Notes under the pieces: model-generated
The model's database searches: none
What the model was told of the DNA's origin: nothing
Seen by the model: only the letters and a program-made list of their open reading frames with translations
In this document: one piece after another, positions 5,408 to 64,000 of the stretch
Position numbering within the stretch: position 1 is the stretch's first letter
How the letters are laid out: the number at the start of each line of letters is the position of its first letter
Program-made: the position numbers and the translations under genes
Source: Ascidiella aspersa
Taxonomy: Eukaryota
Assembly: GCA_963924565.1 (NCBI GenBank)
Contig: OZ004610.1
Location: 9,114,001-9,178,000, forward strand
Reading direction: 5' to 3'
Length of the DNA stretch: 64,000 nt

Positions 5408-5430
5408 ATGGAGACAGAGATTGCGCGAAG
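5408..5430 (+). CDS. Candidate short alternative first coding exon (METEIAR)
   Basis: gagATGg start and a perfect AG|GTAAGT donor in phase 2. It is very short, so chance cannot be excluded. Confidence 0.45.
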
Positions 5431-7462
5431 GTAAGTGAAACGTGACGGACTTTCCGAATCCACAACCAAGACACGAGTAACATCAGCTGCGATTACCGTG
5501 GCTGTAACATTAGCGCCAACAATGGAAACCACCTTATTGTTCCGAACCTAAACACGCAAAGTGCTGGTTGTGCCGTTGTTGGGCTTTCAGTCACTTGCCT
5601 TGCACCACACACGCTACACAGCGTATATTAACGAGGCAATTTAGCGACGTGTTTGTCCGAGGCAAACAGCACATGATGGACACACTTTATGGGCGTGTTT
5701 TTCTACGTTATACACAAACAGGAAAATGGCTATGGACCTCTGTAGCACGTGATTATTCTCGTGCCTTTTACGACACTTTGCAGAATTCTGTTTTGCTGCT
5801 TTGCTGGTTGGGTCTGCAGTGCGTTGGTGGGTCAGTCATCTGGTTTGAATGTAGGTTAGGGATTAGAATTAAGAGCTAAAATAGTCAGCGGTTATTTTCG
5901 ATCGTGGTGGGAATAAAGTAAATTGAGCAGGTTAAAATCGGTTTAGTTTGAACTGGACTGAATCAGCAAAGCTTTCGTTTAAAAGCAATTTACTTTTTTT
6001 TAGATTACCATTAATTTGGAAATTGGGAAACGTAACTTTGGCATGCCAAAAGCAACTTGATTTAAAGAAAGAGCAGTTTTTACTTAAGAGTCGGTGTCTT
6101 CTCATGTTTCTAATCGAGGGGTTATACAACACTTTTCGTCGTAAAGTCTTCGGTTTTCCCGCTTACCTTTCTCCTGTGCTAAAGTTGCTTTGCTTCATCT
6201 TGTGTTTGATCGTTTGACGTACTTGCGGTGGTACGGCCTCGATAGCTAAGTTCACGGGAACAGCCAGGCCCGTTTTACTTTTATTTTGGCCAGGTTGGGT
6301 ACCTTGCTCCCCGCGAATAAGGCTGTAAAGGCCCGCTTTTGAATAGGTCGTCTACGGCCGATTTTAAAGCGGGCGTTAAATGTTTTTAAAAGTGCAGACC
6401 ACAATAACAATCCTCCTGCTTCCAAAACAAGCGATCGACCACTGATCTCAGGCGGATTACAGAACGACCGATTTGTAGCGACTTCTTTGTTGGGCGCGTA
6501 AGCGGCCGAAGAGACGTAAACCGTTTTTGCTTGCTATAATCCGAACGCAAAAACGCGCAAAGTCGATCGGTTTCGCGAAAAGTCACTTGTTGGTTTTCGC
6601 TGGAAAACGCGCCTTTTCGAGGTCGAGAGGTGGCTGCTTCGGTTTTGTGTTTGGCTCGATGAAAAAAATATTTAAAGCTTACAGTGGTGAGAAAAGGTGC
6701 TTTGCAGTCGCCGTCCGTAGTATTTACAGGCGGCTGACGCCTTACGGTTCGAGACTCCTATGTTTCTGCAACAAACAACGAATGTTGCATAATCGGATGA
6801 TCGGATCCAGCCACAATCTAAGGTGGAAGATATTTGAACTATACCGATTACACAGGGAACTTTAATATTCGCCATATCGCCACGGATTAGTTGTTTTACA
6901 CTTTACAGGGAACAAAAAGTCCATAGGGAACGTAACATTTCAGACCTTGAATGCTTTCGGGCTAAAATATTGCGTTGATTTACTGCTAATGTTGACTTGA
7001 ATTTAAAATTGCTTCGTCTGATAAAAACTGTCGCCAATATTAGAACGGCCGCCACAATGCCGGACCGCGAAAATCCTAGGCTGAACGCGGGCGGCCGCAA
7101 CATATGACATTTAAAAGGCAGCGAGCGACGCCGCAGACGCAACGAGGAGGTGAAAAGCACTTCCTTAAGCCATCCTTCTGCGCCTCTCGAGCAGGAGCAA
7201 GACGCGGTCGACCCACGTACATGCAAACCCACCCGTTCGTTTGTTCGCCAAGCACCGACAAAGGACCGCGTTCACTTTGTCACGTACGCGGCATTCGGCG
7301 CCTTGCTTTGCCGCGAGGCGGACGGAAATGCCGCCGAGATGTTTCCTCTTATGCAACTGAGAGGAACCACAGCGCGCGTCTTACGCAACGTCCAATCTTT
7401 TAGTGGAAAACGTTTCACAAAACCTTTTGTTCACCCTTTGCACCTTAATTCAACCCTTAAAC

Positions 7463-7743
7463 CAGTGGTTCTCAACCGGGGTGCCATTTATAATGCTCAA
7501 GGGTGCCGAGAGATATTTGACAATTTTAAGAATCTAATTTTTGCTCAACTCTTACAATTTTTTATTGTAATGATTAGAGTGGAATAAAAAACTCAATTAA
7601 ACTTCCTACGTTGTATAGTTAATGTGCGTTGTTCGAGTTCCGTTTATTGTGAAATTCTATAGTGAATCACCTATAGAATGATTGTCGTATAAATCTTGTA
7701 GGGGTGCCGCAATCTGTTAGCCATAAAAGGTTGAGAAACACTG
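7463..7743. mobile_element. hAT-like (Charlie-type termini) MITE, family A
   Basis: TIRs cagtggttctcaacc / ggttgagaaacactg (14/15 match) and a perfect 8-bp TSD ccttaaac at 7455-7462 and 7744-7751. No coding capacity. Confidence 0.88.
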
Positions 7744-10700
7744 CCTTAAACTATAGTACATGACTGTTTAAAAGCTTTACTCATCGTGTTTGTGTAGGCT
7801 CTGTTGCAGCACTGCTGCGGAAAACTGCCTTTAATTGCTTTTATGAATTTTTGGTTGTCAGATTTTTGGAACCAGTCATCAGTAGGGTATATAAATAATA
7901 TGGGTAGAAATATGTCTGGTAAATATTGGTGTAGTGTGTGTTCTCGCGATTTCTCTTCTGAAAATATAGCAATGGACGAGACATGGTTTTATTCAGGAGA
8001 AAGACCTTGCTAACTGGCCAGTGTGTATTATCGCTTGTTGGGAGGCGATATTTGACAGTTAAAAGGGCATCGGGTTTCGGTATACCGGTGCGTCTTGAGG
8101 TATACGAGAGAAGGCGTTAAGCTTCAAAAAACGAAATAAATTTTCTAACTGTCCATACCGTGTTTCAGTTTGCCGATAGGATTGACTTTTTCTGGTCGTA
8201 AAAACAGCTAGCATTTAAAGTTTTCGAATGTAAGCAAAAACAAATCTGATAAATATATAGACGTGCCTTGTCTTTTCGCCTCTCACCTCATTTTTCACGG
8301 GTTTTAATAACGTCAGCGAAAAGTACAACTGACATAGCTTTGTATGCTTTTACAATGCGCGATGAAAGATAAATTGGGTATCTTCGTGTCAGCGGTCTTA
8401 ATACTAAATTTCTATAAAATAATCCTAATTCCTGTGTAGTTTTTAGGGTCAGATGCCGTGCATACCGCCATACCGTGTCAAAGTGTTTCCCCTTTTCTGT
8501 TTGGCAGCGCAACATTCCAAAGCAAGCACAAGTTTCGCAAACCCGCATTTGTATGTCGTTAGTCAACACCTTAAAGCGGTGGGTGTGTTCGAAACGCCCA
8601 TAAAACGCGAATAACATGCGGCCTTGGCGTAAAACCGCATTGCTTGTTTGCTGCGCTGTTTATTTCGCAATTTGCCAATTGATTTTCCGATTGTGCGCCA
8701 TATGCCCAGAATTCAAAGCGCGCCCTCATCAACTGATACATTTTGCTAGTGCCAAGATTGAATATATTTTGTTACCTTTCCACGAAAGCCAAAACGAGAA
8801 TGATTTGCTATTTCGACCCATGTTAAGAAATTATTTCCTTTTAAACTTCGCCCAACTTAAACCTCGAAAAACAAGAACATTAGAAATATAAACTTGCATG
8901 TGTAAAATGATATAAGTTCAAGCGGGTTTGCATTGCTGGACAGCATTTGCCTTGGATCGTGTTTCTATGGTGACAACCGCATATCCAAGCGGTTAACACT
9001 ACACCGTTATTTCCTCTACAACGGCGGTTTTTGCCGCAATATTTTCGTGTGGTTTGGTTACAAAAAGCAGAACAATTCCAGAGGGCCGATGGTTTACTAC
9101 ATGAAAAGGCCATCTTGTTCTAGCTTAACCACGCTTAGAAAATTAAAAAAAAACAGCGAAAAAATGATAACCAGCGACAAGCAGACGTGTAGCGTATGTC
9201 TGTATGTTTGGGTGGCGTTCAGGGTGAGACGTAAGTGTTGTGTGTAAATTGCGTTTTGCGACCGCTAAAAATAGACGCCGGCGTGTCTGTTTGCGCACTT
9301 TAATTGAGGTGAAATTAACGTTATCGCGTATAGAAATCAAACAGCCGCCTAGCGTATTTTTTCCTGTACTGATACAGCTATATGCATATATATAGGCAAT
9401 AGGCATGCTTTACACGGACTTGGTTTGTACTCTTTAAAACAACAAGAGAGGGTTGTCAGACGTATGATAAAGCTTCGTAATTTTATTAGCTTTCGTTTTG
9501 GCAAATGCTCATGTCATCTACAGTTGCGGAAATCTAAGATTCGAAGCAAAATGACGCTAGCAATGTTATGGTGGAACATTGTTGGACCGAACAAATGACT
9601 GTAAAGTTTTATTATTTATTTGGGTCGTTCTTTTTCCACTGTACAGATATATGTAGGAAACAATATGTAAATTAATTACGGCGCAACACCAAATTTCAAT
9701 GGCGTTGTATTTTCAATTAGTTTAACTGGAGGCTACAAACCGTACAGCATAAAAAAAAAAAAAAGTCCGCCGCAGTTTCACGTTTACGGCGAAACTCTCC
9801 GGAAGACGACGCAGGTATCACGGCTTTCTTCCGTTCCAGCTGAAAACGCGCTCCGAACAAAATCGAGACGAAACGTGTAGAACCAGAATTGTACACACCG
9901 TCCGTTTGCAGAAAGAACAGAACAGAATAGCCGGTACTGCGGATATGCCTTTTGCCGTGCGGCCGTAGGAAGCGACCGCATAGAACGCTTAATAGCAACC
10001 GGTCGGGTGCCAGCAGTCGCCCATCGGCGCACTTACGCGTGTCTGCGATGGGAAACTCGGCTTCTTGTTTATACTAAAATGGTGCCCTGTGCCGGTTTGC
10101 GCTCTCAGTTGTCACTGGAGTAAGGACGGGTCCGCTGATAGACTAGTTTCGCCATTGCAGCTTATGTTTATCGCTAGTGAAGAGGCTAATCGCGACATAT
10201 ATACTTTAAAGGGGCTAATCTCGGAACTATTACAGTGCACTTTGAGAAAAAAGCAAACAAACCAGTAGTCGTGAAACTGAAAATGTAGCGGTTTGGCTTT
10301 ATCAGTAGCATTTAGACTTGAAAAAGTTTTGGGAACTTCGATTTTAGGTTAACTAAAAACTCGTTTAGATCTCAGCTCCTTAACGCTGGTTTTAATATCG
10401 CCAGCAATAAATTCCGCGTACTTCATGTTTGTTTCCTCAGCGCGATGAAACACTTCAGAACCATGTGAAGGGTTAACCCACAAACTCCGAGTAGCAATAA
10501 CGCCGCTCCAAGTATCATTTCACAGAGCAAATATTAATTTAAAGAAAACGCTTGGTGGCGCAAGGGAGCAAAAACAGAATAACCACGTGTGCCTGTGTTG
10601 CATAACTGTCTAAGAACCAAATCAAACTATACGCATTCTATTGGCCTCTGTTCTAAACTTTTGTATGCCGAACGATTTGCGCTATTGGACTCCGCTCCCT

Positions 10701-11110
10701 CGATTAAACTTTGATATCCAGGCGGCTTTGTTGAATTGTGGGAAACGTTACGAAATAAAAAGGCGAAAATATCGCCCCAAACCCCTTTTGACCCTTTTTT
10801 TGCTTCGCTCATAAAAGCGCAAGGCACTGGCCAGCAGTCAATTCTTGCTCGCTTTTAGTTTTGTGCACTTTTGTACAGCTCAGAATAACAGGAATTTCAA
10901 ACCCGACAATGCATTTTCAAACCTTAAAAACAACGCAATCGCCTCGCTCAAACATTAGTGCTTGATCCTTAAGCGCATCCTTATTTTTCTCGATTGCTAC
11001 CGGCTTGAAAACTCGCGCGACCTCACCTCTTCCCAGTGCACGTAGTCGTCAATCGCCGTCAAGCGCTTAACGCGGGACGTATCCTGCCACTTTCCAGAGA
11101 GAACCAATCG

Positions 11111-11499
11111 TCGGTGGCCTCCGTGTGAACCCGCGGTACACCGAGGTCGAACTCCCCATCGGGGCCAACGCCCCCACCGCCCGGCTAAAATTAATGTAGC
11201 AATTCCAGCCATAATTTCGTAAGTCAACTTAGCGATTTTACCTAGTGGTAAAATTATCGAAAAATGGTAGGTGACAAACTGCTGGAGGTAACTAAACTTA
11301 GTAAAAAGTAAATTGTAATTAAATACCTTACGAAAATTTTTTTCAATTTTACTTGTTTTGCTTGTGAGTCGGGGCACTTTATGTCCGAAATATCTATTAG
11401 CGCCGGAATACAGTGTCAAGAATCGGTGGCCTCCAAGTGAACCCGCGGTACACCGTGGTCGAACTCCCCGTCGGGGCCAACGCCCCCGCCGCCCGGCTA
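11111..11499 (+). repeat. 77-bp GC-rich direct repeat flanking an AT-rich dispersed repeat copy
   Basis: 11111-11187 and 11423-11499 differ at 5 positions. The enclosed 11201-11425 is similar to 12974-13227. Confidence 0.88.
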
Positions 11500-11702
11500 T
11501 CCCACCCTCTTAACCTGTGGGTCGTGCTTAGCGTACAGCCGATCTGCTGTATACCGTGCACGGCACGACCCACGCTGCCTGGCCCGCTACCTCGTCGCGC
11601 GAGGAAATGTGCCTTTCCGCGCTGCAAAGGAAGCAAGTTAGCTGATGGGGAAATTGATCGGGCCAAAAAGCGCCCGGCCGGCACGCGATTGCGCCATAGA
11701 GA

Positions 11703-11729
11703 TGTGCGTGTGCGTGTGCGTGTGCGTGT
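11703..11729 (+). repeat. (TGTGCG)n microsatellite
   Basis: tgtgcg repeated about 4.5 times. Confidence 0.8.
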
Positions 11730-12551
11730 ACTGCTTCAACAGTGAGTTTATTTCGAGGCAGATCAGTTGCGTAGTTTGTAGTGCTACTATGAGTAAGTTT
11801 TTTTAGTATATTATATAGGTATGATATATGGTAGTTTCATTTTTGTCACCCTTTTTCTTTTTTTGTGTCGTTTTTTCTTTGCGCCTTGTTGGCCATGTGT
11901 GTCATTTCCTGATGAAGCTTTCTAAATAATTAGCCCAAACGTTGGACAAACAAATAGATACCAGAGGAACTTATTTTTAGTATGCTATGCCTGGTAGCAA
12001 CAGCATATTTATATAGTAGATTTGTGCATCTTGGTTTCATAGGGCTGTGACGTATTTTCTCTTCTAGGATGCTTATTGGATAACAATCATCTATTTTCTG
12101 CTTAACTTACTTGTGCGGTTTCGGTTTGACCAGCATAAACAAAAGAGTTTTTCACGATAACGGCAGCTGTCGTTGTTTCAACTTTCGGCCGGTGATGCAG
12201 GGCACGAAAAACCCCCAACGCAAAACGGTTTCGCCGCGTTGACCATTTCACGCTGGCCAACACAAACTCGATAGTCATAGTATTAGTCATTTTTAAAGAA
12301 AGCATGCCAAAACAGCGCGTTTCGAACTCTCCATTGTACAACTAGGGATCGCACGCAAAGGGTAGGCGCTTCTAGGGATGGCGGAAGTGGGCATTTTTTT
12401 AGTTTGCTTCTTGTGTTTTGAGCCCCTCGCAGACAAGACCCCATGTCGTCTGCACGCGTCCAACATTTAGCAAAGCCGCTTTCATGTTGTTTAGAAAAGG
12501 GTAGAGGAACTCGTTTGGGGGAAAGGGGCGGGTGAAACGCTATCTAAGCTT

Positions 12552-12641
12552 GGCTGGTAAGATGTTTGCTTAGTCAAGGCTGGTAAGATGTTTTGCTTAG
12601 TCACCTTTTGAAGTTAATTGCACCTTTTTGAAAGTTAATTG
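12552..12641 (+). repeat. Two abutting short tandem duplications
   Basis: ggctggtaagatgttt(t)gcttagtca twice, followed immediately by cacctttt(t)gaa(a)gttaattg twice. Confidence 0.8.
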
Positions 12642-13227: not shown

Positions 13228-16191
13228 CACAACCCTTTTATATGCAAACCGAATATTTGAAAATCTCGCCCTAATGCACGTTAGTGACGACAATGACTTC
13301 GAATGGCATCAATTCTACCACCTGGTTTACGTGTTAACATTATTTTGTATTCGTTTTTTAGCGACTGATGATGCCGTGATTGGCGAAATATATTTCTCTT
13401 TTATAAACTAGAACCTATAGTGACTGATTTTGACTGAGACAAGAAAGTCTATACTGTTTTGTTAACCCTTTCATATCTGATAAAATATCAATAAAGCAGG
13501 ACAAATTTTATCATAGATGCAAAATGTCTTGCAATCCCTTTTTAATCCCCTCGTGAGTACGCATTTCAAAAGTTGTAAAGGTCTTCAGTTGATTGACAAC
13601 CCCTTCGTTGTTTTTTTTTGTTTGACAACGCCTTACGCGACCCTAGATTTTAGCTGCTGTAGACCGACGAGCTATTTATCTTGTCATATCCCGGCTGCAT
13701 TTTACAGCAGTTCGTGATGCTGCTGCGGAACCGAGCCAGGAAAAGCTACGTAATAAACTGGCCCCGCGCGCCGTACATGACATCAAAAATTTTCACACCT
13801 AAAAGAACCGTCTTGTTCGTTCGCCAGGTTTATTTTTGTGCTAAGCCACAGCTATCTCACAACGCGTTAGACATATATCATCTCATGCTTTATGGTACCG
13901 AAATCAGAACCACATTTGATTATATTTGGGCCTTCTATATTATATACTTTAATATAAGCGTATACATTTTACAAGTTGTTATAATTAACAGGTCAATTTA
14001 AATTCGCCTATATTTCTGGTTATGTCTAGTTTCAGTACGTGCCGTGAAGACAATGGAATGCACAAGAGTTATCGCTTGTTCTCAAACTTTATAAAAACAA
14101 TGACAGTGGTGTGCTAGCTCGTTTCGTTAGCTTGATGTTTTATTAAATGACTCAAAGTGTATTTTCGTCCTGATAAAACACTCAAGTCACTTCACGAACC
14201 AAGAGTAGTTTAGCCCAGTATTTCCGGGTCCTTTAAATAATCAACTTCCAAATAGAGACATTGTACCGGCCAAAACGCTGGTCTTCGCTGTAAAATTTGT
14301 GAAATCATCGCGCTGTTTTGTATACGTTCAACATGAATTGCATCTTAACCAACCCTGGTTTTTAATTTAGCGAAGCCCGGTTAAAACTGTTACATTCTTT
14401 TGAATAAAAGCGCACTAACAAAATAAAATCAGTGGGTGTAAAACCTTTTCAATTTCGGTTTAAAGGAATTCAACTGTTGATGCGACAAAATGACAGAAAG
14501 CAACTGACTGGAAAAATGCCAGGCTAAATCGGTAGTTGTCAATCAAGACTGGCGCTAATCCCTAAACTCTCACCGTTAGCTTTAAGCGAATCTATGGATC
14601 ATTTGTCCTAAACCAGTCAAGCTTTAATTTTGCCAACCGGGCGCCTGAATTCCACGCCAGTTCCAGCGTAACAATTTGCAGGTAAAAGTTGCGGATTACA
14701 GCTTGCAGTTAATGCTAGGCCAAACACAATACCTACCGGTTATTTGGTTTACGTTAGTCGCGAAATTAGGTGGTTATGGGTTTGTTACATTGAATTATCG
14801 TTTTTTCGCAAATGACTTAGTTCTGTATATTTCGAAATGGTTCTGGGCAGTCAATATTTAATGAATAGAGTATGTTTGTAGCCGTAGAGTTATTATAACA
14901 ATGAGAAAAGTGTATAGTAGTAATTCAACATTTAATTTTCTGAAAGGTGTTTTAGGTGTCCACTATTTTGCATACCCAGGGAAGTCGAAAGCTAGGTAAA
15001 TAAACAAAAATTGCGAAACTTTACTCTGTCCGACAAATTCTCTTCTAAGCCATTTAAGCCAAATTTGTTTTGACAACTTACCCGAAAATCCCCTAAATCC
15101 CGGTTTCCTTTGGTCTTATTGGCGTCGAACCTTATAAGATCGCTCGCCGGCCTCTATTTGAAAGCGTGTCGCAACAGATCTGTTTCTTGTGTAGCGAGTC
15201 GCCGACTGACCCGCGCGACAAGCGTAACGCGACACTCGTAATTCGTTAATGGCGTTTACCTTGTCGAGGCGGGCCCCGGTTGTCTCCGTTATGATGTCTG
15301 TCTACACTTGCTCGGTCAAATCTAGTATCTTAATGTATGTTCTGGCAACACCGCCGCTTCCTGTCGATAATGTTGCTGTCTTGGAAAAGCCAATTTCGCG
15401 TTGATACAGTTTACATTGCTATTTCGCTAAGCCCCTGCTATTCTTCTGCGCTACTTTACACTTGTTATACCTGGTCAGATTTGCTTTAAAAACAGAAGGT
15501 TGAGTTTTCTTAGTTTCGTCGAAGCGAAAAGTACAGCAAAAGGATTGCGAATATGGCCGATTTCGAAACATTATGTTAGCTGGCAATAAAATGTTGATAA
15601 AATTCGATTAAAAATTGGGTTGCGGGTCGACAATCGGTTTTCGTCACCACGACGGTCGGCAACCTTTTTATGCTTTGTAAACCCTGATTGAACTTTTCCT
15701 TGCGGACGAAATGATCAACCTTAACGTTTTTACTTTCATTGCCGGCAATCGACGCCAATGGTTAAACTGTAGACAGTGTGTGTTCAATCGTTGGGTGTGT
15801 GGACTGTATCACACGACAGCAATTTAAATGTCTTCATCACCAATATATATTTGGCAAATGCCGTTATTTTGACCAAAATTATACGACTTCAAACCAAATA
15901 AAATGGCCAAATTATTTTGTTGGCTGTAGTTTTGTTTTTTTGGGTGAAATATTGTTATTGTCAATATTATTTTTTAATTTGGTTTTAATGCCTGGAAATT
16001 TATTCATACAATGTGCTATCACTTAACGGTTCAACGATTGACAGTCCATCAAGTCGTCAGTGAAATATCACACGCCTAACTCGCGTGAAATGCCTCGTGT
16101 CAATATATTTCCGCTCGTAGCTTTCTAGAAACAAATTCATTTCTGGCAAAAAAACAACAACAAATCGCCGGCCAGTAGTTCTGCAAACGTT

Positions 16192-27502: not shown

Positions 27503-28542
27503 ATGGCATCGTCCGCGTCTTCGCTTCGCAACAACAGTTCGCTCTTCTTCGAGCCGACCAGCTCCCCTCCGCCGAAGAGAACACCCCCGGACAGTCTCTC
27601 CACCGACTCGGGCTTCGCGACAGAGCACGCGTTCACGACCTGCTACGAGAACCCGTGGACCCCTCGCTTCGCCCCAACGCGCCGACCGCGCGCTGCAACG
27701 GCCTTGTGTAACCGACCCAGGACGCCGTTCAAGGTCAGGTTGCTGGACTCTGCCGAGCACAGGGTGTACCCCATCTTCGACGACCCTCCGCCGCCTGGGA
27801 CCTCCTTGCCTGCCGAGGTAGCGAGCCTGGATTCCAACCATATACCCGTGAGCAGAAGCTTCTCGAACGACGCCAACGAGCGCAAGTCACCTGGACGCCG
27901 CCGCTCCACGCTTCGTCCACTCTCGATGATGGCTGCCACCGACGACCTGGATCTTCAACTTGAACTGGAGCGGCCTCCGAGCGCCGGTAAAACGCGCGAC
28001 TCTTCAGTGGTGATCGCGCGCAAACCATCGGCAGCTTTGGTTGAGCCAACTTTAAGCTTTGCCGGAGTGGAGCCTTCGCTTGATGAAGCAGCGGCAGACG
28101 ACGCGTCCCAATGGCTGCAGGAAATCGAGCAGACCACACCCGCCGTTGTGATGCGCGTAAAGAAAGACTCGCCCGAGCAGACTTCCGAGAAAAAGTCACG
28201 CCGCAGATCGCTTCCCTCCATGTTCGGTCTCAAGCGCAACTCGCTCTCCGGCCTGGCCCTCTTCCGGAACGTTTTCGGCGCCGCGCGTTCTCATAGCAAC
28301 GAGCTGGACGAGGACATGGCCAAGACGCCGCCGACCGAGGCGCCAGTTAAGCCGAACGATTACGCGCGTCGTCAATCTTTGCCCGACGGACGCTTCGCGG
28401 ACGCGTTGCTAGGCAAGGCCTCTTCCGGAGGACGCAAATCGCGGAAGATTTCCTCCGCCTCTTCCCTCTCATCCAACTCCTCTTCGTCTTCTTTCGGGAG
28501 CAGATGGCGTCCGACCCAGCGTCGGAAAGAGAGAAAGCAAAG
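27503..28542 (+). CDS. Large alternative first coding exon (346 aa, Ser/Pro/Arg-rich, probably disordered)
   Basis: Longest ORF in the window, with codon usage like the GAP exons. It ends at a strong AG|GTAAGG donor just before its stop, in phase 2, so it joins in frame to 40966 or 53871. Confidence 0.82.
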
Positions 28543-37500: not shown

Positions 37501-40500
37501 TGTAGAGTAGGCCCTGTGGCATTGCGGGTTGTTTGCCCTTTCCGCTGACCGCAGCAGCGCGTATTCTGCTATCAACTCGCGTGTTTATTGTTCGTTCTTC
37601 TGCCTGGTATTTTTTCTGCTAGTCGTTCGAGCCGCAAAGACCACGGTTTTTGGAGGATTCCGGACGCCGTTTTATGCGTTTTTAATTTCGGCTTCTAGAC
37701 ATCGCGGCCATTAAGGTGGAGACGTTGATATCAATTTCGCAAAAAGAAGATATAGATTGCGTTCCTAGCATTCCTTTTTCGATGCCGTCAGCTCGTCAGA
37801 ATACCGACCGCCGAATTGTGTTGACCTGTCAAAAACGGATGTGTTCGTTAAAATTTAATTTCCACCGCTGACCACACAAGGAAAAGTGCCAAAAAGTTTA
37901 GCCTGACAGCTTCCGGTCGAGTTTTGCCGCTTTTGTGCAAAGTCGTGTGAACATAATGTTCACTAAAGAGGGGTGGAGTCTAGACTGTCGAGCTCAAATC
38001 AGCATCCGTCGAAACGTTTTGAACCTCGTCCTATTTTGGCTACTTTTGTAATGACACTGTCATGTTAAGCGTTTGGTGTGGACCGTTATCTAAGGGTAGT
38101 TTCTGTTGCTGTTATTTATAGCAGAAGTCAACCTCTGGTCATAGTAGGCGACGAAATGTTGATGACCTAACCCATTAAGGTGTACTTGGTGGTCGACAGA
38201 ATGGCGCAATCGTGGTTAGATTCAGTTTGAGAGTGTCAGCAAAACGCAATCTGTTGGTTGGCTTGTCGTCTCACGTTAACGCAGTCGAGATGCCCGGTAC
38301 GATTTACGCGGCGATGTATTATTTATGTATTCCAGGCGTTGCTTTACAGAGTATAGGGTAAATGGACAGACTAAGCAAGCGAATTTTCTGTACACATACA
38401 GTGGCCTTTCGCGGAAAGCTTTAAATACATCCTTTGCTTAGTTTTCCTATTTGAGAAACTAATCCCACTAATGATTCTGGTGTGTGTAGTTGCCATAATG
38501 TGTTTGTCTGGGTTTCGAAAGGCCTATTGCATTGTGTGTAGGAAATGTTGGAAAGTAATGCCTAGACTAGAGGTCGGGAATTTGCCATGTGGTTAGATCG
38601 AGCTCATGATTTAGGATAGAAGTCTTGAGAAACGTTTTTGCACCACTTGTGTGGAAACCCTGAATAATCCATTTGTCACGCGGTTGTACTTTGCGACACT
38701 GGAGCGAAATTTGTGTTGCGAGCTTTCACTTGTTATTGCCCTGGTCGCGTCACGAAACATGTGGCATTTGTTCCGGAAAGGCGGCGCGAATGGCACATCA
38801 CATTCAGGCAATATGCGCAAACATCGTTTTGTTCGCACGCTCGTTCCTGCAATTGGTGCAGGCACCTTGTGTCAATAGACACGCCCTCGAATCGCAAGAT
38901 AGCAAAAGTCAGCCGAGACGTCTGTAAGGTGGCTCATTAGATGTGATAATAGGCGCACAAAATATAAAACAGCCCTTTGGGTATGTTCGTTAATTAATAG
39001 GTTCGTTAATAGAGGAATGAGGTGGCACTATGTAAAGACAAATTATATTTTCGGGTGAAAACTTGTCGAGAATTCAAAACAGCTTGTCGAGAAATTCAAT
39101 ACGATGTGTCTTTACGTATAGTGTCACCTGATTCCTCTATTTAAAATGAGAAAGATACGGCCTTTTACAAAGAAAAGTTTGTTATTATTGTGTCTACAAG
39201 ACGGTAAAGGTTTTGTTGCAAATTTAACACAGCTTCAAATAAAAATGTGCGCCGTCGTGATATATTTTCTACAATGCGCCACGTCGCCATCATTTTTCGG
39301 ATTTATTGTGTTTATTGAAACGCCTCAACCACCGACGCAATATTAATGACGCATTTTCGTAAATGTGTCCCATTGGTCTTGGCTTGTGTATTTTCTCCAC
39401 ACGGTTGTTAAGTATCGCACACTTTTGTAGTGTTTTAACAACAGGATATTGCTTTAGTTCGTCGAAACCATTCAAAGTGCTGTTTTCTACTGTTTTCATG
39501 TGTTAAAAGCGTGAGTTGGGTTTATCTGATGACGCAAAATCTCTGTAAGCCGTAATGAAACACGCATTGAGATTGATCTAAATCCGACGTACGCATGTTT
39601 TGTTATATACAATAATAATGTTATGTGGTACATTTCGTTTACTGTCAGTCGATTTTATTCCAGTTTCAAGTCATTTGGGCAAACTCCCTTGCGCCGCACA
39701 GCGGATATGTTTTTTTGTATTTATAAGTCCTCTCTAGTGCAGCCAGGATTCAAAAATTTAGCGCGACTGTATAAGTATTTAAAGTGAGTAGAAATCGAAA
39801 TATCTAGATTAACCTCAAAGGGCTTAAGTCGTGATGTTTTGGTTTGTTAAAAAGACTTCCTTGCATTTTGGTCTTTCCGGCGTCTTATCATATGATTGCT
39901 GTCCAGTGCGACTTTTTGTAAACACGGCGATTCTGGAATGATATGTTCGTGTTTGTTACTCGGTTGCAAACAACACTATATTGGAAAATGTTGAGAAATT
40001 GAGCAAACTACTTACAGCAGGTGTTAAGCGCAGTAAACATTCGACGTTTGTACCCGGGCGACCTTTTCAAGCTGTGTCAAAGGGCATGATGCAATTGTCA
40101 ATTGAGATGCAATCGTTTATACCCAAACAAGGTCCAAGCAGTCGTCCCAGATTGCGCTTAAACCGGTCGATGATGAAATCACTCATCGAATGATTGGCGT
40201 CAATGCTCCTCGATCGTACCCGTCGCTACGGCAACCGTAAGCAATGCGCATGCGTGAGAGCGCGCGCGCACAATGCCGGTAAGCCGTTGCAAAAATAAAA
40301 GCTCGAAAAAAAACGGCGTTCGGGCTGAGGTAGTCGCCGGCGTGTTTTGACAGTCATTTTCTCTCCGTGCCCTAAACTCGGTGTTTTTCTTTTTTCCGTC
40401 TTGTTGTTTCGCAGCAGCGCCTGTTTATTTTCCTAAGTTGTTAGGCATTTGCACGCCTCTGTGGCTAACCTTTAATTCCCTTCATTGACGCGTTTGACGG

Positions 40501-40536
40501 ACAGCTGAATATCTTTCTCTCTTCATTCAAAGGCCT

Positions 40537-40567
40537 TATATAAAGCAACTGCTGCCGAATTTCAGTT
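40537..40567 (+). promoter_or_regulatory. Putative TATA + Initiator core promoter
   Basis: TATATAAAG at 40537 and TCAGTT at 40562-40567, about 30 nt before the ATG at 40594. Confidence 0.4.
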
Positions 40568-40593
40568 TCCGTCTATTCCTAATAAAAGAAACC

Positions 40594-40667
40594 ATGCCCG
40601 AAATGAAATGGTTTGATAATGTTCGGAGCCCGGCAGTCCTCCGACAGCGAAAAGCGCGGCCCGACAG
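40594..40667 (+). CDS. Candidate alternative first coding exon (MPEMKWFDNVRSPAVLRQRKARPD)
   Basis: accATG start, AG|GTAAGC donor in phase 2, 298 nt upstream of the LIM micro-exon acceptor, with TATA-like and Inr-like elements just upstream. Confidence 0.6.
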
Positions 40668-40965
40668 GTAAGCTTCCAAATCGGGGTAACTACAAAGTTT
40701 CCACATTTTCCATTCCACACAGACCATTGTCCGGTTTCACGTTAATTTTATCCCGCAATCGAAACGATTTACCCGGAAGGCGAAACTTCCGCAAAACTTT
40801 GCGGTTCCTATCTCGTAAGTGGGGATGAAAAAATGCCTTCCGACCAGAAAAGCCGCTCTTGTTTTCGCGTATAGGGAAAGCGCTAACGATATTATACTCG
40901 TATAAATGTTTTTTATTGATGTTAAGGCTGTGCAATTCTAACATTGTACTTGCCTTGTTTTTCAG

Positions 40966-40998
40966 ATGCGACGCACCGCTCACCCTCAAGACAGCCCG
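40966..40998 (+). CDS. RAP1GAP: LIM domain micro-exon 2 (33 nt)
   Basis: Acceptor tgccttgtttttcag, donor CG|GTAAGT, phase 2/2. Translates (K)CDAPLTLKTA(R) and supplies the sixth LIM ligand at exactly C-x2-C spacing. Confidence 0.85.
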
Positions 40999-43592
40999 GT
41001 AAGTGCCAATAAGCCTATAGCTTTTTAAATTTGTTTTGATAACCGATTTACAATCACTGTGATTTAATTGAACGGACCCTTTGCACGTACAACGCGGTTG
41101 GAGAAGCGTCACGCAAACATGTTTTCTAAAAAAACAACACAAAAAACAACAACACCTTCCACCCACATCCACTCATATTCCTCCCAAACGACGCGATTTT
41201 TTCGAGAGGGTGCACATTGATGACGTTGCCTGGTCGTCATCGATTTATCCCCCGAGAGGGCAAGTGGCGCGTGCGATAATAGCGCGCGGCCGCCCTTGCC
41301 ATTTTCTCCCTATGTATATGCGAACAAACGGCTGCATTCTCACGCAACAATAGAGCCGAGTTGTTTTTTATTCCCCGGCTAGTCATGCGCTGCTGGCCTG
41401 CTTGGCGGTTGGACAAATCTCTGTGCCGCTATGTGGGCGCTGCTGCCTATGCAGGCTAGATTTATTGCAGTTGTTCTCTTTGCTGCTTTTGTAGGACGGG
41501 GGACGAAGGTCGAGCAGAGTTTAGAGTATTTATATTGTGCAATAGAAGCACAACAAACAGAACTGAGCTGTGTGCTAAGGAAGTGGTTACTTTTGCAAAG
41601 GAAGTGGTTAATTTCAGACAAACTTAAAACAAAATTAAAAGCTGTATGTGAAAAATTATTTAAACATAATCCGAAAGGATATTTAAAAATCATTTAAATA
41701 TAATATTTGTTTCCACATTTTCTGTAGTTAGTTTAAATACAGCAGGACTTGAAAACAGGGCAAGGTTTTAGATCATTTTATTTAGCCTTGAGCGCCAAGA
41801 CGAAGTGCAGGGCGGAAACTTAATATCTCCTGTGGTAAAAGGCAGTAGACTGGAGGTCTCCCGCCGGTTTCTGACTTTTCGAAAATTTAAAAACAAGCTT
41901 CGCAGCTCTCTAGTAGGGCGGCCAACTTCTGGCCGGGCTCGCTACACATTGCGAGAGGCATTTCACAGCTCATTGGCAAGCAGCGGTGGCCTGGTTGACT
42001 AGCGAGTTCAAAGCGGTTCGATTCGCTTTCGCAGCTTTTGAAAAAAAAAACACGGAACAAAACGAACCTCGCCTCAATTCCTCGCTTTAGCTATCGCTTA
42101 GTCGGCTCAATCGACCGCGACCTTCATAAGCCAAAGTCAACACGCGCCCGTTGTCGAGGGCTGGTGGTTTTGAATTTGTGTAAAACGATCGCAATAATTC
42201 CGTCCGGTTAGTGGTTTGTATAAATAAATTAACGCCAAACGCAGCAACTACAGCTGCTTTGTTCAGCGCGACTAATGGAAAGCTTAAAAATCTCGGGCGC
42301 CTGCATTGAGCGAAAGGCGGATATCACTGTTTTATTACGTTGAACTGTTTTGGAAGCGTACTAACAGTTTCAGAGAAGGGCTTTTGACAGGCGCTTTTTA
42401 AATATCTATTTGCTTAGCTTTCAGGGTGAGGGAGAGCAAACATTTTGCGAGGTAGTAGTAGCCGGAACTGCTTCTCTTTTTCCTTTGTTCGCCCTCGAAA
42501 GACGGATGTAAATTTCGTGCGCCTGGCTCGCCTGAACTTCAAAAAAGGCGCCCAAAGCATACATGCAACTAACTAAGTGCCCGGTCAGGTTCTTTGTCAG
42601 GACTTTACCTTACCTCAGTAGTCAGCATAACGGTGCCAAGGAGCCAATGTCCGCCTTGTTTTTGCTTTATTGTGCAACTCGGTCGCATTTAGTAGCTAGT
42701 CAGCGCGATCAGTCGAAATGCAACCGTCGACGACAGTTGCAAGTGCGCGGCAATTATTTCGGTTGGTTTAGGAGTTTCTGACAACGTGACTGACCAGGGA
42801 AAACAGCTCGCGCCGCTGGACGCTGTCGTGTTTACACAGAGCCCTTTGACGCGAGCGCGCTCGAAAGTCGAGAGCGCTTCATCGCCAAGCGTTTCTGTGA
42901 TTCCAGGCGTCGTTTTCTCGTGGGACGCGCGCATTGCGGAAAGACACTCGCCCGCGAAATATTCGCCCGGGCAATAGGCGACCCGCCGAGCTTAGACCGC
43001 GGCGCCGAGGACAAGGCAGACGGAAGGCGGGCGGCTAGGTGCAACCCGATCTGACCAGCGTGCGTGAAATTACCTGGCCTCACTCGCCCCGGAGCTGCCA
43101 GGCTGCGTGTTTGTTCTTAAGTCGCGTTATTTTCGTGCGGTTGGCACCAAGCGAGCATTGCTCGTATAAGCAGGCGGCGAACCCGCGTTGCACGACGCCG
43201 TGAGTAAATGCGAAAGTGCATTATAGGTTGCAGGTATAAATCAGCGTGAGTCAACATGGGGTTGCCTATAGGCTGGTGTTAGGACAGTTTACGCCCAGCA
43301 TTCCAACTGGAAGCCAGGGCGAAGCAGGCGGACAAAATTCGCTCTAAAAACGTTGGAAGCATATCAGTTATCTTTGACAGTTAAGAACAGTGATTCGGCA
43401 GGCCCTTAGTGAGACAGCAGCAACTTATTTAACTGTGTTATATGACAGAGTATTTGCTCAAAGTTTGAGTTGGGTTATTATTTGTCTTTGTATTTTACCA
43501 GTTTAATTCTTCAACGTTGTTTGGTGGCTGCCAACCAACCAAACAGACTAGGTAATTTTGTTGTAACTCGTAAAGAACCAACAAGTCACGAA

Positions 43593-43951
43593 ATGAAATC
43601 CTTGCGTCGTCTATCGGTGCGCCATAGCGCCGATGACGTCATCGAGCAAAGCCGCCCTAAAAACCTGCCGTTGGTGGCGGAAGGCAAGCTGTCACTCAAG
43701 GCCGAACTCCGCGCCTCGTTTTCTTCCCTACCTCACGCCAAGCTCCAGCGAAAACGAGCGACCAGTGGGATTGCCAGTGAGCCCGAAAGCAGTCCCGAGG
43801 TTCGGCGACGCTGGTCGCCCTTGAGCGGGTTTCTAGCGTCACCAAACGGCTCGAGCTTCTGGCTGCCACTGTCCCCTAGGAGTCGCTACAGCGCCAAGAA
43901 GAAGCGCCAAGCGGCGACGGCAAACTCGAGAACTGGAGATTCGGATTCAAG
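43593..43951 (+). CDS. Candidate alternative first coding exon (119 aa, MKSLRRLSVRHS...)
   Basis: ATG-started, Ser/Arg-rich, coding-like stretch in an AT-rich context. It ends at AG|GTGTTT in phase 2, shortly before its stop; the donor is weaker than the others. Confidence 0.62.
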
Positions 43952-44234
43952 GTGTTTTGTGTTGTTTTAACGCTGATAAAACATGTTGCTTTGCTAGGGT
44001 TTGTTTATTTTGACGGGCCTTACTCGGAAAGTATTGAATTCTTTCCGTGTGCAATATCAAATTTACTTTATTTTTAAATATTTTGACGCAAATTTGAAAT
44101 AGTGTAAAACCTTGAATATCAAATAGAGTTATTGACGCGCGAAGTATCCAGACGAAATCGCCAGATGTCGATGTCTGTCATATAGAACAAGACCGAAAAG
44201 GTGCTTTCGCGTGGGCTGCCTGGGCCCGGCGACA

Positions 44235-44269
44235 TATATAGCAGGAGCACTTGCTGCAGAATTTCAGTC
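44235..44269 (+). promoter_or_regulatory. Putative TATA + Initiator core promoter
   Basis: TATATAG at 44235 and TCAGTC with its A at 44266 (TATA at -31), followed by ~485 nt with no ATG. Confidence 0.4.
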
Positions 44270-47165
44270 TTTTCGCAAACGCGCGGTCGGCTGCCAGGAA
44301 CAGCTTTCCAAATCAGAAAGGTGGTGAACGGGGTCGCCCTGGCGCGTTGGACGCGAGGCCTGTCCCAACAAGCGTAACCACAAGTGGCGGTGGCGGAACC
44401 ACGGGGAGGGGGGCTGGCCGGCTACGCTTGTCGCGAAGTAGCTGAGCGTTCCGCCATTACACCGGTACTCGATCGATCGAACTTCTTTCGCTTGTTTCGT
44501 TTTGCACGCGAGCAAAACCAACAGCGCGGCGGCCTACAGGAACTTCGTGTAACTTCGCAGTCGCTTGTACTTTATCGTAGAGCTCCTGCTGTATACCAGC
44601 TCGGTACTTCGCGCTAGTAAAGCACTTCCGCTTTCATATTCAGGCTAGCGTCGATTGTAGAGTTTCCAGCTTCGCGTGACGCTTAATAAGCCTTTGTTTC
44701 TTTCCTGGCGGCCTTTTGTGCAGCTGACAGCAACAGCAGTAGCAGCAGCGGATGCCGCACAGTGAATACTTGGGCATGCGTTGTCAGGTTTGAGGCTCAG
44801 CTGTAGTCCTGGTGTTTGTGTGTTGCTTCACGGCGGAGACAAAGTTCAACCGAGGTCGTCTTGTACCTGTGCTGAAATTACTGACGTCCTTCAAGCGGTT
44901 CAGTGAGCGATTTTACACCTCTAATTAGGGAACGCAGCGAAAGTAATTCAACGAACTAATTTTATTGCTTTTAGAAAATTCAAAAAGAGTTCGCACAGTA
45001 AGCAACCAAACTGTGACGTGTTTTCTTTCGCAACTGTGCAAGCTTTCAGAGACTTTACCTGGCATCAAGTTAAAATTGATTTTTCGCGTCGAAGGACGCC
45101 AGCCCCTAAAACGCCCGGCTCAACTTTTAGGGGATTGCTGTGGGATTTGCGGTTGAAAGCTTTGGAAGAAAAAAAAAACGTTGCGCTGAAAATTGCCTTT
45201 GCTTGTTTGCCCGTGCAAAACAAACGCTCGCGTGCCTTCAGTCACGGGCGTTTAAGGCAATTACCCGTGCAGGCCCGGGGGTAATAGGCATTTCGGCGCG
45301 CTTTAAATTGCACGGCTTTAATCGCCTGATTTCGTTGCGGTCTTTGTGCTTGTATTTAGCCGATCAAAGACCTGGCGTTTTGCTACCGCCGCCGCTGCTA
45401 CTGATGTAATATTTATGGGGTTTAATTTTGCCAGCTTTTGGGTCGATCAAGGACCATTCGCGCGCGGCATGTCGACATACTGATCCTCGAGTAAACGACG
45501 TAAAAGCGGTTTGCGGAACGTTCCCCTCAGGTTACTAGGGCGGGTATATAAACCGGCGGTCCAAACGCCCGAGATTGCATTAGAGTTCAGTCGCTGCATC
45601 GTATTGCCTTCGTTTGCAGTATAGTTTGTTTTATGCGCAAGTAGGAATTGTTTTGCAGAACAGGTATTAAAGCCAGAATAGGCATATTTTACTTTTCGAC
45701 TGGGATGTTTAGCCTCCTAGACCTGCACAGGAATTATACCTCTTTGAAAACGGCATTTTCAACAAAACCATAAAGTTTGTCAAATGCGCTAAAGAAACGA
45801 GCCAATTTTATTTGAAAATGCTTTTTAAAAACAGTTTATCCCGGCATCACCTTCATGCCATCGTAACTTTAAAAACGTTCGCTTAGAGTCGGTAAAACAA
45901 ATAGTTAAAGGACATTAAATGTAACGACTTGAACGCGAGATAGCCGTGAGACCAATAATTTGAATAAGACTTTTTGACTTTTTAAATATATATGATTTAA
46001 TGGTGCGCGATGATATTCATTAACTATAACTAATAAACCCACCAAACAAAACAGAATCGATGCAAACACTCAAATTGCGTTGTTATAAGGCATTGGAAAA
46101 AGTCGTTTTTAGCCTTAGAGCGCTGTAAACTGGTCGATAAAAGTGCCAATTAAGCGACATTGGATGACGTCACAGCAGTGGTTTGTACCACTTATTTTTT
46201 ACCTTCATTGCTCTATTTTGGGTTATCATTCAATGTTTTTAACTGGGCACCTTCACATAATTAGGGTTTTCAATTGGCGCGGGTTTATAAAGGGCGAATT
46301 TGTCGTCTAAAAGTAGCTATTTATATATTTTTGTAAATGAAAAGAAGTCATCGAACGCCACAATGCAAATTTGTCGCGTGCCAGCGTCATTCCAGCACTA
46401 ATTGACGCCGAACGAAATGTGACGTCATGCGCGGACACGTCACGAACGCCTCTTTGGAGGTCAAATGAAAGCGGTCGCGTAACGGCCGATCGAAAGCGGT
46501 GGCCAGCCTGCCATTTGCGTGCCCTCGGCCGGACACTGAACCCCCGTTATGCAAGCGCACAAGCCGCAATACAGTGCGTTGTTTACGGAAGACGCGGAGC
46601 ACGTAATTAGGAAGCCCCGTTGATCGTGCCGTGAAACGATTTAGATTCGTTATATAGTCGGCAATGTATCCGTCTTCTTTTCTGTATATACGGTGGTGCA
46701 GTGTACCAACTCCCCCCATCTCACTCTGTCGCTCGCTTTTGCGCATTTGATTTGATGCGCCCTTAATAATTGATGCTGCTTTGACACGGCGTCAGCTGTA
46801 CTCGGGAAGCGGGCAATTCTTGGGAGTTGCTGAACCGCGCGTTGTACATATAGACCACGGCGCCTGCTCATCTATTCTGATTTATTTTAGACGCGCGAGA
46901 GGCGTAGGTCGTCTGATAAAAGGTGGGTGCGCATCCATTAGAGCAAAATTATGCGACCGATCGTCAGCTTTTGACAGGCAGTTGGCAAGCATTTAATTTG
47001 CCTCAGTCGCCCGACGACTTTGAAAGGCGAAGTTGCAGCAAGACAGCACACCAAGCCAGTCGCATTCTGAAGTCGCAGCAAATATATTAAAGGAGAACTG
47101 TTTCAACATTTGCTGCTCGTTGCTGTTTCCTTTGCTGCATTTAAGTCGCTACAAGAAGTATCGAT

Positions 47166-47257
47166 ATGGTTTCTCGAGTCTACGTTTCTCCACTTTTCGC
47201 CGACCTTTCAGAGGACGACGACGATGACGTCATCTATTTGCCTGCGGTGACGTACAA
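47166..47257 (+). CDS. Candidate alternative first coding exon (MVSRVYVSPLFADLSEDDDDDVIYLPAVTY)
   Basis: ATG to a consensus AA|GTAAGT donor, 92 nt, phase 2. Its LSEDDDD motif recurs at the start of the 53091 exon. Confidence 0.62.
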
Positions 47258-52089: not shown

Positions 52090-52369
52090 CAGTGTTGTAA
52101 ACAATTCATTTTGAGCTGACTTAAGTCCCAGTCAAGTCATTTGTAAAGTAACTTAAGTTCAAGTCAAGTCCCAGTCAAGTCCTTGTCATAAAAATTATAT
52201 ATTATAAAAAATTATATTATTTTAACCCAAGTCATTTTTTCTAAATACGGAAGTCAAGACAAGTCATTTGTCCAAAAGACTTAGGTTAAGTCATTTTGTC
52301 TACAAGACTTAAGTCAAGTCATTTGAAAACAGTGACTTAACTGCATTCACTTAAGTCTTTACAACACTG
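52090..52369. mobile_element. hAT-like MITE, family B (internal CAAGTC repeats)
   Basis: Perfect 12-bp TIR cagtgttgtaaa / tttacaacactg, perfect 8-bp TSD gactcagg at 52082-52089 and 52370-52377, and many subterminal (c)aagtca motifs. Confidence 0.9.
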
Positions 52370-53090
52370 GACTCAGGTGTTTTGAACCCGAAAAACGCGC
52401 GACCGAGGCATTTACCAACGTTCTTGTTTGATAAACCGACGCGAACCCGTTCGACTTACATCGATTTTAATATTCCTTTATTGTTTCTTTGCGCGCTTTC
52501 AATTTGCCGGGCAATCGGGTTAAGGCTCTGTACGGTGCTTATGTCGGACAAATATGTGCCATTAATGTCGAGTGGTCATCGATTGGTCTGAAACGGCCGA
52601 AGCACCTTCGTTGTGTAAATAACGGCACATTTCAAAGTTGGCGTTCTGTCCTTCCGAGCACGCGTTGTTTAGGGATTTTTTTTGTATTTCTGGAGAAATA
52701 TTTGCGTTGGTCTCTGTCGGATCGATGCCTTAGGTGCTGAAAAGTATACTACAATAAATGTGTATTTAAGGGAAGGACAGTTGTGTTTAAAAATACATTA
52801 CGTTTTTTGGTCCGTTGATCAGAGAATGCGCATACCACGAAATCTGCCTCGCTTTTGCCTTGTGAATCACGTATTTACGCCTTTGTGAATTTGGGGAGAA
52901 AAAACGTGTGTTTGTTAACTTGTGGTTTGTCATGACGTTCGTTTTCAAGTACCCAGCCCAACCCTAAGCTATTCAACACTAAGCGATAAAGAGTTAACTT
53001 GAGAAATTGTGTGTTTGCTGCCTGTGACGTGTGACTGAAAAAACGACCCCCCCAGTGACGTCACCCGCAATACCCCTGCTTGAATCGCAG

Positions 53091-53594
53091 CCCCGACGAG
53101 GAGGAGCTTTCGGAGGACGACGACGACCGACCGCCGTTTCCATTCGCCCAGCTAGTGCACTGGCCGGCGCTGGGCAAGTTTGCGCTCAAGTCGCCGCTTG
53201 CAAGTCGCCAGTCGAGCGCTGAGCTGCGCTTGCAAACTCAGAGCACTTCGGAAGTCGAAAGCGGCGCTTTTAATTCGAAGGAGCACTATGGCTTGCGGCG
53301 CGTGCGCAGCGTAGGTCCGTGCGACGACGCTAGCAAGCTCTCAGCGGCTCCAGTGGCGCGTCTGCGACAAAGAAGGTCGGCAGTGTCCGCCGCCGCCTCG
53401 TTTGACCAGCCCAGCTCTGATATCGGCTTTCAGGAGGAGCTGCTCGATCAGTTCGGAATGCCGCTCAAGAAGAACACGCTTCGCATCACGGCCCGCTTCA
53501 TCGGCTCACTGCAGAAGCACGCCAACCAGAAGGCGAGGGCCGAGCGGGTGGCCGCCGCCGCCGCGCTCGCCACCTATCTCAACAACCCGGGAAG
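53091..53594 (+). CDS. Symmetric phase-2/2 cassette exon (168 codons)
   Basis: Acceptor cccctgcttgaatcgcag, donor AG|GTAGTC, 504 nt, open frame PDEEELSEDDDDRPPFP...YLNNPG with coding-like codons. An in-frame stop at 53056 and no early ATG indicate entry by splicing. Confidence 0.75.
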
Positions 53595-53870
53595 GTAGTC
53601 GGATTTTTCGCGGCCGCGCGTGGGCGTGCCGGCGCCACACTCACGTTTTTCGCGTTTTCGTGTGGCGCTTTACGCGCGTTAGAACGCCCAACACACACAT
53701 ATACATAAGACACATCACGCACTCCAACCGCGTCGAGTTTATTTATCTCGGCTTTTTGTTTGCGTTTACCTCGGCATTTTGTCTGCGCTTTCCACAACTT
53801 AAACACTATAGTGTAAATAGTAATGAAACTGCCAGCTGCGCGTTCTTTAACATACTTCATTCGTTTGCAG

Positions 53871-53949
53871 CAAAGAGTCGGACGGCGGCATCTTGTGCGA
53901 CCCTTGCAATCAAGACGACGGCAACGGCGGCAAGATGTCCAACGACAAG
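53871..53949 (+). CDS. RAP1GAP: LIM domain exon 3 and linker (shared phase-2 acceptor)
   Basis: Acceptor cttcattcgtttgcag, donor AG|GTATGT, phase 2 in and 0 out. Translates (R)KESDGGILCDPCNQDDGNGGKMSNDK and supplies the final C-x2-C of the LIM. Confidence 0.88.
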
Positions 53950-63899: not shown

Positions 63900-64000
63900 G
63901 TACTGAGTTTGTATTATACTCTTGAACTGCCTATTCAAGTTGCTATTAACCTGTGGGTGTAATTACTTGCAAAGTGCCGAGGGAATTACTTTTGACAAAA

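Follow-up and report, generated by a model that had tools for sequence, protein, structure and literature searches.

Can a single gene draw on several unrelated first coding exons that lie within the introns of its own N-terminal domain? The question is raised by a stretch of 64,000 nucleotides (nt) from the ascidian Ascidiella aspersa (GenBank assembly GCA_963924565.1, contig OZ004610.1, positions 9,114,001 to 9,178,000 of the forward strand), called here the window, which has no N and whose + strand encodes the 5' half of a Rap1GAP gene in a genome of 308.6 Mb. An earlier reading of this stretch, referred to here as the original prediction, placed at least five ATG-initiated exons in the two introns that split the LIM domain of the gene into the exons LIM-A, LIM-B and LIM-C (Table 1). 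These five exons, numbered here as heads 1 to 5, were taken to be alternative first exons. The proposal of alternative first coding exons in the LIM introns held for heads 2 and 5, for which we found two Phallusia mammillata proteins (P0001 and P0002) and a contig from a third species (L006), but not for heads 1, 3 and 4, which showed neither homology nor a coding signature. The explanation that we favor, and consider probable, is that two or more promoters lie inside the LIM introns in this half of the gene, each with a first coding exon of its own, the other three heads being due to chance.

Heads 2 and 5 have spliced counterparts in Phallusia

A search with the 346-amino-acid (aa) translation of head 2 returned one protein, P0001, annotated in Phallusia mammillata as 'Rap1 GTPase-activating protein 1' (432 aa), which aligns to 98% of the query with 43% identity (E = 2.5e-52) and begins at the equivalent methionine. 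The blocks shared by the two sequences are LSTDSGF..FTTCYENPWTPRF, KKSRRRSLP.FGLKRNSLSGL, RRQSLP, and a Ser-rich tail. Downstream of the head, P0001 reads ...GKKR/CDAPLTLKTAR/KESDGGVLCDPC..NDK (slashes mark exon boundaries throughout), that is, LIM-B, whose peptide is identical in the two species, and then directly LIM-C, thus indicating that the orthologue uses the equivalents of junctions 28542>40966 and 40998>53871. The coding-like support claimed for the 346-aa exon was borne out by this orthologue as well as by a codon-position test, in which the G+C content at third codon positions (GC3) was 0.71 (chi-square [chi2] p = 3e-6). An independent nested gene at the 27503 open reading frame (ORF), which the original prediction had itself named beforehand as fatal to its proposal, was excluded, since P0001 continues into LIM-B and LIM-C. 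We regard head 2 as very likely to be a real first exon.

An exhaustive HMMER search with the exon at 53091 to 53594 led to P0002, a second protein of the same Phallusia name (A0A6F9DPR6 / CAB3265434.1). Its order is MMSYRDPSYLAASLSSDEDDDDVIYLPALT, a homologue of head 5 (which reads MVSRVYVSPLFADLSEDDDDDVIYLPAVTY in the window), then the homologue of the 53091 exon, and then KESDGGVLCDPC..NDK, corresponding to LIM-C. The 53091-53594 module, which follows head 5 in P0002, is absent from the head 2 protein P0001.

Head 5 was also present in L006, a metagenome contig of a third ascidian-like species that was recovered together with L007 in one metagenome scan. This contig stops 1.2 kb upstream of the head 5 homologue and covers neither heads 1 to 4 nor LIM-B. 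The homologue, at L006:1178-1277, has the ATG and an AA/GTAAG donor in phase 2, and lies 8.8 kb upstream of the homologue of the 53091 exon (acceptor tttttag/C), with LIM-C next. Differences between head 5 of the window and that of L006 fall 7, 5, and 16 times on first, second, and third codon positions, respectively. Conservation in relatives, a check proposed together with the five exons, was thus found for head 2 (P0001) and for head 5 (P0002 and the codon-position bias relative to L006), but heads 1, 3 and 4 had no homologue. Judged from these alignments, the splice paths of heads 2 and 5 are those read in the Phallusia orthologue and head 5 is conserved together with its phase in a third species, which makes head 5 very likely to be a real first exon.

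In the mechanism that we propose, head 2 would be joined to LIM-B and then to LIM-C, while head 5 would be joined to the exon at 53091 to 53594 and then to LIM-C. Both routes would lead to proteins with a mere remnant of the LIM domain and with disordered, Arg/Ser-rich N-termini instead. These N-termini would carry conserved motifs of the basophilic-kinase or 14-3-3-like type, namely, RRRSLP and RRQSLP in head 2 and RLRxRRxAVS in the 53091 exon. The junctions used in Phallusia are presumably used in Ascidiella aspersa as well.

The 53091-53594 module (RLRxRRxAVS ... MPxKKNTFKITARFIGSLQKH ... KAERAAAAAALATYLTDP) is conserved well beyond ascidians. It was also encountered in short ORF calls of other assemblies (P0004-P0013), with a Met of its own just upstream of the module. 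Searches with exon 53091-53594 found no Pfam family and no usable match in the ESM Atlas.

The LIM domain is predicted to span three exons over 49 kb

Taken exon by exon from the genomic reading of LIM-A, LIM-B and LIM-C, the eight ligands of the LIM domain (PF00412) are spaced C-x2-C-x17-H-x2-C-x2-C-x2-C-x18-C-x2-C. On this reading, the N-terminal LIM domain of this Rap1GAP is encoded by three predicted exons spread across 49 kb. LIM-A alone (GC3 = 0.93) gave a partial match to Pfam LIM, covering profile positions 1-29 of 58 (E = 0.0011); its 19.6 bits fall short of the 22.9-bit cut-off. In LIM-C, the first 12 codons differ from those of L006 by 5 synonymous changes and 1 non-synonymous change, and the phase 0 donor of this exon, AAG/GTATGT, is conserved. 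The acceptors at 40966, 53091, and 53871 each give one base and take two from the preceding exon, and all five heads leave 2 nt, as the phase of these acceptors demands. The numbers of ligands said to be retained were right on the same reading, three of eight for the first three heads and two of eight for the last two.

Downstream of LIM-C, the peptide ADDLFAMLEKMQ/ATRMDEQRCSF, split between two exons, was compared by eye with the human GoLoco motif, and we take it to be GoLoco-like; Pfam returned no match for the 26-aa GoLoco exon by itself. In the constant body, PF02145 was matched on four exons, which together cover profile positions 2-184 with E values from 1e-3 to 1e-16, three of the four being above the 27-bit cut-off.

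Table 1. Predicted features of the Rap1GAP 5' half, in coordinates of the window
Feature	Position	Strand	Remarks
LIM-A exon	4656..4781	+	Zinc ligands 1-5 (CHGC-x17-H-x2-C-x2-C); phase 2 at both ends
Candidate head 1, METEIAR (7 aa)	5408..5430	+	Perfect AG/GTAAGT donor; unsupported
Head 2, putative alternative first coding exon (346 aa)	27503..28542	+	Orthologue splices head 2 to LIM-B
Candidate head 3 (24 aa)	40594..40667	+	TATATAAAG box 57 nt upstream of ATG; unsupported
LIM-B micro-exon (33 nt)	40966..40998	+	xCDAPLTLKTA-R; ligand 6 (one C); phase 2 at both ends
Candidate head 4 (119 aa)	43593..43951	+	Weak donor AAG/GTGTTT; unsupported
Head 5, putative alternative first coding exon (30 aa)	47166..47257	+	..EDDDDDVIYLPAVTY; orthologue splices head 5 to exon 53091
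Conserved 168-codon exon	53091..53594	+	RLRxRRxAVS ... MPxKKNTxxITARFIGSLQKH ... AERxAAAAALATYL; phase 2 at both ends
LIM-C exon	53871..53949	+	KESDGGILCDPC...NDK; ligands 7-8 (CxxC); phase 2 in, phase 0 out
GoLoco-like first-half exon	54497..54532	+	ADDLFAMLEKMQ; phase 0 at both ends; in frame with LIM-C; kept and collinear in L006
Conserved ATG mini-exon, outside the original list	56487..56540 (L006:14577-14630)	+	MQRVRKYSRSFRSAIKYS; GT donor in phase 0; between the GoLoco exons
GoLoco-like second-half exon	56787..56855	+	ATRMDEQRCSF...; phase 0 at both ends
Rap_GAP domain exons	61550..63900	+	Constant body, runs past the window end; Pfam PF02145 exon by exon

The five heads as a set do not exceed chance

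Direct reading and a script agreed that the five ATG segments are as originally described: all are open, they measure 23, 1040, 74, 359, and 92 nt, each a length of 3n+2, and each is followed by GT. Their peptides were likewise found to be mutually unrelated, with zero cross-matches when the heads were compared with one another. In-frame stops precede the ATGs of heads 1 to 5 at 5306, 27482, 40495, 43443, and 47142, and the donor contexts are, in the same order, GCGAAG/gtaagt, GCAAAG/gtaagg, CGACAG/gtaagc, TTCAAG/gtgttt, and GTACAA/gtaagt.

We then considered how often such segments would be expected. Sites matching AGGTAAGT at 7 or more of 8 positions occurred 10 times on the + strand and 10 times on the - strand of the two LIM introns, the expectation from a first-order Markov model being 13 +/- 3.5. 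Among donors with at least 6 of 8 matches, 27 ATG-open candidates were in phase 2 versus 18 and 17 in the other two phases (chi-square p ~0.2). By donor and phase counts, the set of five heads as a whole is thus not beyond chance. Two phase 2 candidates outside the original list, at 9196-9230 and 14901-14995, have donors of equal quality, and no coding signal was found in either.

That all five heads are chance ATG-to-GT segments in introns would agree with these counts of donor-like sites and phase 2 candidates. For heads 2 and 5, however, this explanation is refuted by the transcript-derived orthologues P0001 and P0002 together with the conservation in L006, and we give it next to no credence.

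The heads were also compared by composition. A GC3-driven three-base periodicity was seen in every confirmed exon, including those of 26-66 codons (GC3 0.71-0.93, p from 1e-2 to 1e-6), and in head 5, but the same codon-position chi2 test found none in heads 1, 3 and 4 (p about 0.75 for each of heads 1 and 3, the value for head 3 being 0.76). No head matched a Pfam family, and a genome search for paralogues of the heads found none. A profile of CpG observed/expected over the whole window showed no island or promoter signal at any head.

The CpG observed/expected ratio itself is above 1 (median 1.27) across the entire 64 kb, in exons and introns alike, with no CpG depletion.

Heads 1, 3 and 4 are most likely chance segments

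The original prediction had allowed that the short exons might be chance. This fits the 7-aa and 24-aa heads, which are at chance level and lack a homologue, but not the 30-aa head 5, which has an orthologue and a counterpart in L006. Going by base composition, a donor as good as that of head 1 should turn up by chance about once in 49 kb, and head 1 has a second in-frame ATG at 5345; that it is a real first exon seems distinctly unlikely. Heads 1 and 3 are each single copy in the genome. For head 3, a role as a real first exon is doubtful.

For the 119-aa head 4, the claim of independent coding-like support failed, its composition being flat by codon position (GC1/2/3 = 0.56/0.57/0.66, chi2 p = 0.8) and a homologue lacking. 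Searches with head 4 yielded no protein match (among candidates of 66-208 aa), no usable ESM Atlas match, and no paralogue in the genome. The 174-codon open frame to which it belongs is not unusual, as the + strand also has unexplained frames of 161 and 159 codons. Reads of the DNA run X4 ('Organism B') are ~99% identical to the window and hence carry no deep conservation signal; the only change that X4 shows within head 4 (43928 G>A) is synonymous. We consider it unlikely that head 4 is a real first exon.

A codon-usage score of head 4 that exceeded those of all 53 null ORFs (>=100 codons) was rejected as evidence, because off-frame and reverse-strand scores were nearly equal, indicating that the score reflects G+C content. 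In one X1 DNA contig, just downstream of head 4, positions 43968 and 45745 are linked through 34 other letters, possibly reflecting an indel polymorphism of 1.8 kb or a variant of the assembly.

Overall, the segments at 5408, 40594, and 43593 are most likely chance ATG-to-GT segments.

Weighing the alternatives

Several observations weigh against a reading with two real heads that lead into the GAP body and three chance segments. Head 3 has a canonical TATA box (TATATAAAG) 5' of its ATG, and young or non-conserved first exons can lack periodicity and homologues, as heads 1, 3 and 4 do. Both P0001 and P0002 pass the ...NDK donor into the intron (VSYI...), and neither links a head to the GAP domain. 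No transcript or protein with LIM-A was found, and LIM-A joined to LIM-B was not seen. Finally, the single RNA run, X5, searched over 40000-45999 (~6% of the run), gave 6 reads without joints, and no exon was covered by any of them, whether LIM-B or heads 3 and 4. This result says nothing either way; LIM-B, validated by the orthologue, likewise had zero reads. In all six X5 reads the first mate maps to the - strand, a pattern that + strand pre-mRNA would account for.

The status of heads 1, 3 and 4 bears directly on the array as originally conceived, in which all five heads would be used, each from its own promoter, as a LIM-on/LIM-off switch on one GoLoco-GAP core. All five are phase-compatible, four of the five have donors with at least 7 of 8 consensus positions, two are validated, and head 3 has its TATA box; in addition, 4 of 7 strong non-validated donors on the + strand are ATG-open in phase 2, where ~25% would be expected (binomial p about 0.1). 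Strong donor-like sites are, however, equally common on the - strand, the donor of head 4 is weak, heads 1, 3 and 4 lack both homologues and coding periodicity, and no X5 read fell on head 3 or 4 among the 6 reads over 40000-45999. As to the TATA box, head 3 is the sole head to carry one, both validated heads lacking it, and the TATATAAAG motif occurs once per 2.6 kb on the + strand. We hold a full array of five to be very improbable.

The passage of both Phallusia proteins beyond the ...NDK donor, where they run into the intron and stop, is what would be expected if heads 2 and 5 belonged to short transcripts polyadenylated in the intron after LIM-C. Such transcripts would encode head-only proteins, from a nested or overlapping unit sharing LIM-B and LIM-C with the Rap1GAP gene. 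Against this, the read-through tail is not conserved, being VCQSPAVLSRCFVR followed by a stop in the window and VCFIYL... in L006, while the LIM-C donor is both good and conserved and GoLoco-1 starts 547 nt downstream of LIM-C in the same frame. The exon order is conserved too, L006 being collinear with the window for the 53091 exon, LIM-C, both GoLoco exons, and the first Rap1GAP exon. A search with the retained-intron tail of P0001 for more Phallusia isoforms recovered only P0001.

The way in which the Phallusia proteins were obtained may also matter. In the de novo embryonic transcriptome of P. mammillata, the C-terminus served to sort the peptide models, of which one was kept per C-terminus, and their names came from the best Ciona robusta BLAST hit (PMC7237864). 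We infer that P0001 and P0002 come from this data set. If so, the Ciona Rap1GAP model would contain these N-terminal parts, and the rule of one model per C-terminus would explain why only retained-intron forms show the alternative heads. Head-only proteins from a separate unit are, in our view, improbable.

We therefore return to heads 2 and 5 as first exons of the Rap1GAP gene itself. From the collinear exons and matching phases, both heads would continue into the GoLoco-GAP body. A full-LIM isoform would also be expected to exist, because the three LIM exons fit exactly and the LIM-B and LIM-C peptides are near-identical where the heads are only 43% identical.

A conserved mini-exon lies between the GoLoco exons

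Comparing L006 with the window by blastn revealed a block of 52 conserved nt (56479-56530) in the interval that separates the GoLoco exons. It overlaps a mini-exon that reads E-M-QRVRKYSRSFRSAIKYS/GTACGG in the window and E-M-RRVRKYSRSFRSAIRHS/GTGAGC in L006, the ATG and the phase 0 donor being common to both. Third codon positions account for 8 of the 12 differences, and the codon changes comprise 6 synonymous and 3 non-synonymous ones. The upstream flank in the window is purine-rich, and no acceptor was found in it. The mini-exon is probably another alternative first exon, joining the phase 0 acceptor at 56787, and this route, if used, would leave out the first half of GoLoco. The peptide of the mini-exon, MQRVRKYSRSF (RK.S.SF), may resemble the MFGRKRSVSF-type N-terminus of vertebrate Rap1GAP2. 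Ser7 of Rap1GAP2 is phosphorylated by PKA (PMC13025221).

With this mini-exon, a broader arrangement can be tentatively envisaged, in which a conserved switchboard of several promoters would control the N-terminus through four or more entries (an upstream full-LIM start, head 2, head 5 together with exon 53091, and the 56487 mini-exon) and toggle two modules independently. We view it as a possibility of rather low probability. If true, the LIM domain would be lost from head 2 onwards and the first half of GoLoco from the 56487 start, each entry would install a different set of kinase and 14-3-3-type motifs, and the promoter chosen would go together with whether exon 53091 is included (P0001 lacks this exon, and P0002 has it after head 5).

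Other open frames in and around the window

An open frame of 281 codons, located 7.2 kb upstream of the window (L004:1937-2779, G000:C4:9105937-9106779), shows coding-like periodicity; Pfam gave no match for it at E <= 0.01. Within the first LIM intron, two nearby and similar frames on the + strand, 11071-11196 (IVGGLRVNPRYTEVELPIGANAPTAR) and 11401-11742 (IGGLQVNPRYTVVELPVGANAPAARL), look like a local repeat or the remnant of a mobile element.

Relation to known systems and significance

The original prediction had likened the locus to UGT1A and the clustered protocadherins, in which variable 5' exons precede a constant 3' body. The general layout is shared, but the likeness fails in its specifics. 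The variable exons of those clusters are whole-domain paralogues spliced to one constant acceptor, whereas the heads described here are unrelated in sequence, have no paralogues, and lead to different acceptors (40966 versus 53091): in the Phallusia orthologue, head 2 is joined to LIM-B and head 5 to the homologue of the 53091 exon. Plectin, which was also invoked, is closer in that unrelated first exons with their own ATGs enter downstream exons in a common splice phase. It has, however, about a dozen heads, compared to the two or three supported here, for which a targeting function is only putative.

Vertebrate RAP1GAP and RAP1GAP2 belong to the same GoLoco and Rap_GAP family and likewise have several short, basic, Ser-rich heads derived from different first exons. 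The ascidian gene differs from them in having two heads inside the introns of a LIM domain, and vertebrate Rap1GAPs are not known to carry a LIM domain. Splice variants of Rap1GAP2 were reportedly described by Schultess et al. in 2005, a paper cited in PMC13025221. Internal promoters that trim LIM modules occur in LIM genes such as LIMK2 (LIMK2a, LIMK2b, and tLIMK2) and ABLIM1 (long, medium, and short forms). There, as proposed here, the choice of promoter drops all or part of the LIM domain while the body is kept, and half-LIM remnants stay; the ascidian body, in contrast, is a GAP rather than a kinase or an actin binder, and the isoforms of Ascidiella aspersa are predicted ones.

The layout is therefore real but ordinary: the use of alternative promoters giving LIM-less N-termini, rather than a special array of five exons. 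The proposal is partly confirmed, with two conserved alternative first exons and a probable third at 56487 leading to LIM-less Rap1GAP N-termini. No new principle is involved, as N-terminal trimming by alternative promoters is common and has precedents among Rap1GAP family members as well as LIM proteins. For annotation, a checked exon map now covers the 5' half of this ascidian LIM-GoLoco-Rap1GAP gene; automated gene prediction would probably split off the 346-aa exon as a gene of its own and overlook the exons of 33 and 92 nt. For the biology of the family, the comparisons point to LIM-less N-terminal isoforms that are conserved among phlebobranch ascidians, and they provide an example, open to testing, of a Rap regulator that would lose a domain depending on the promoter used.

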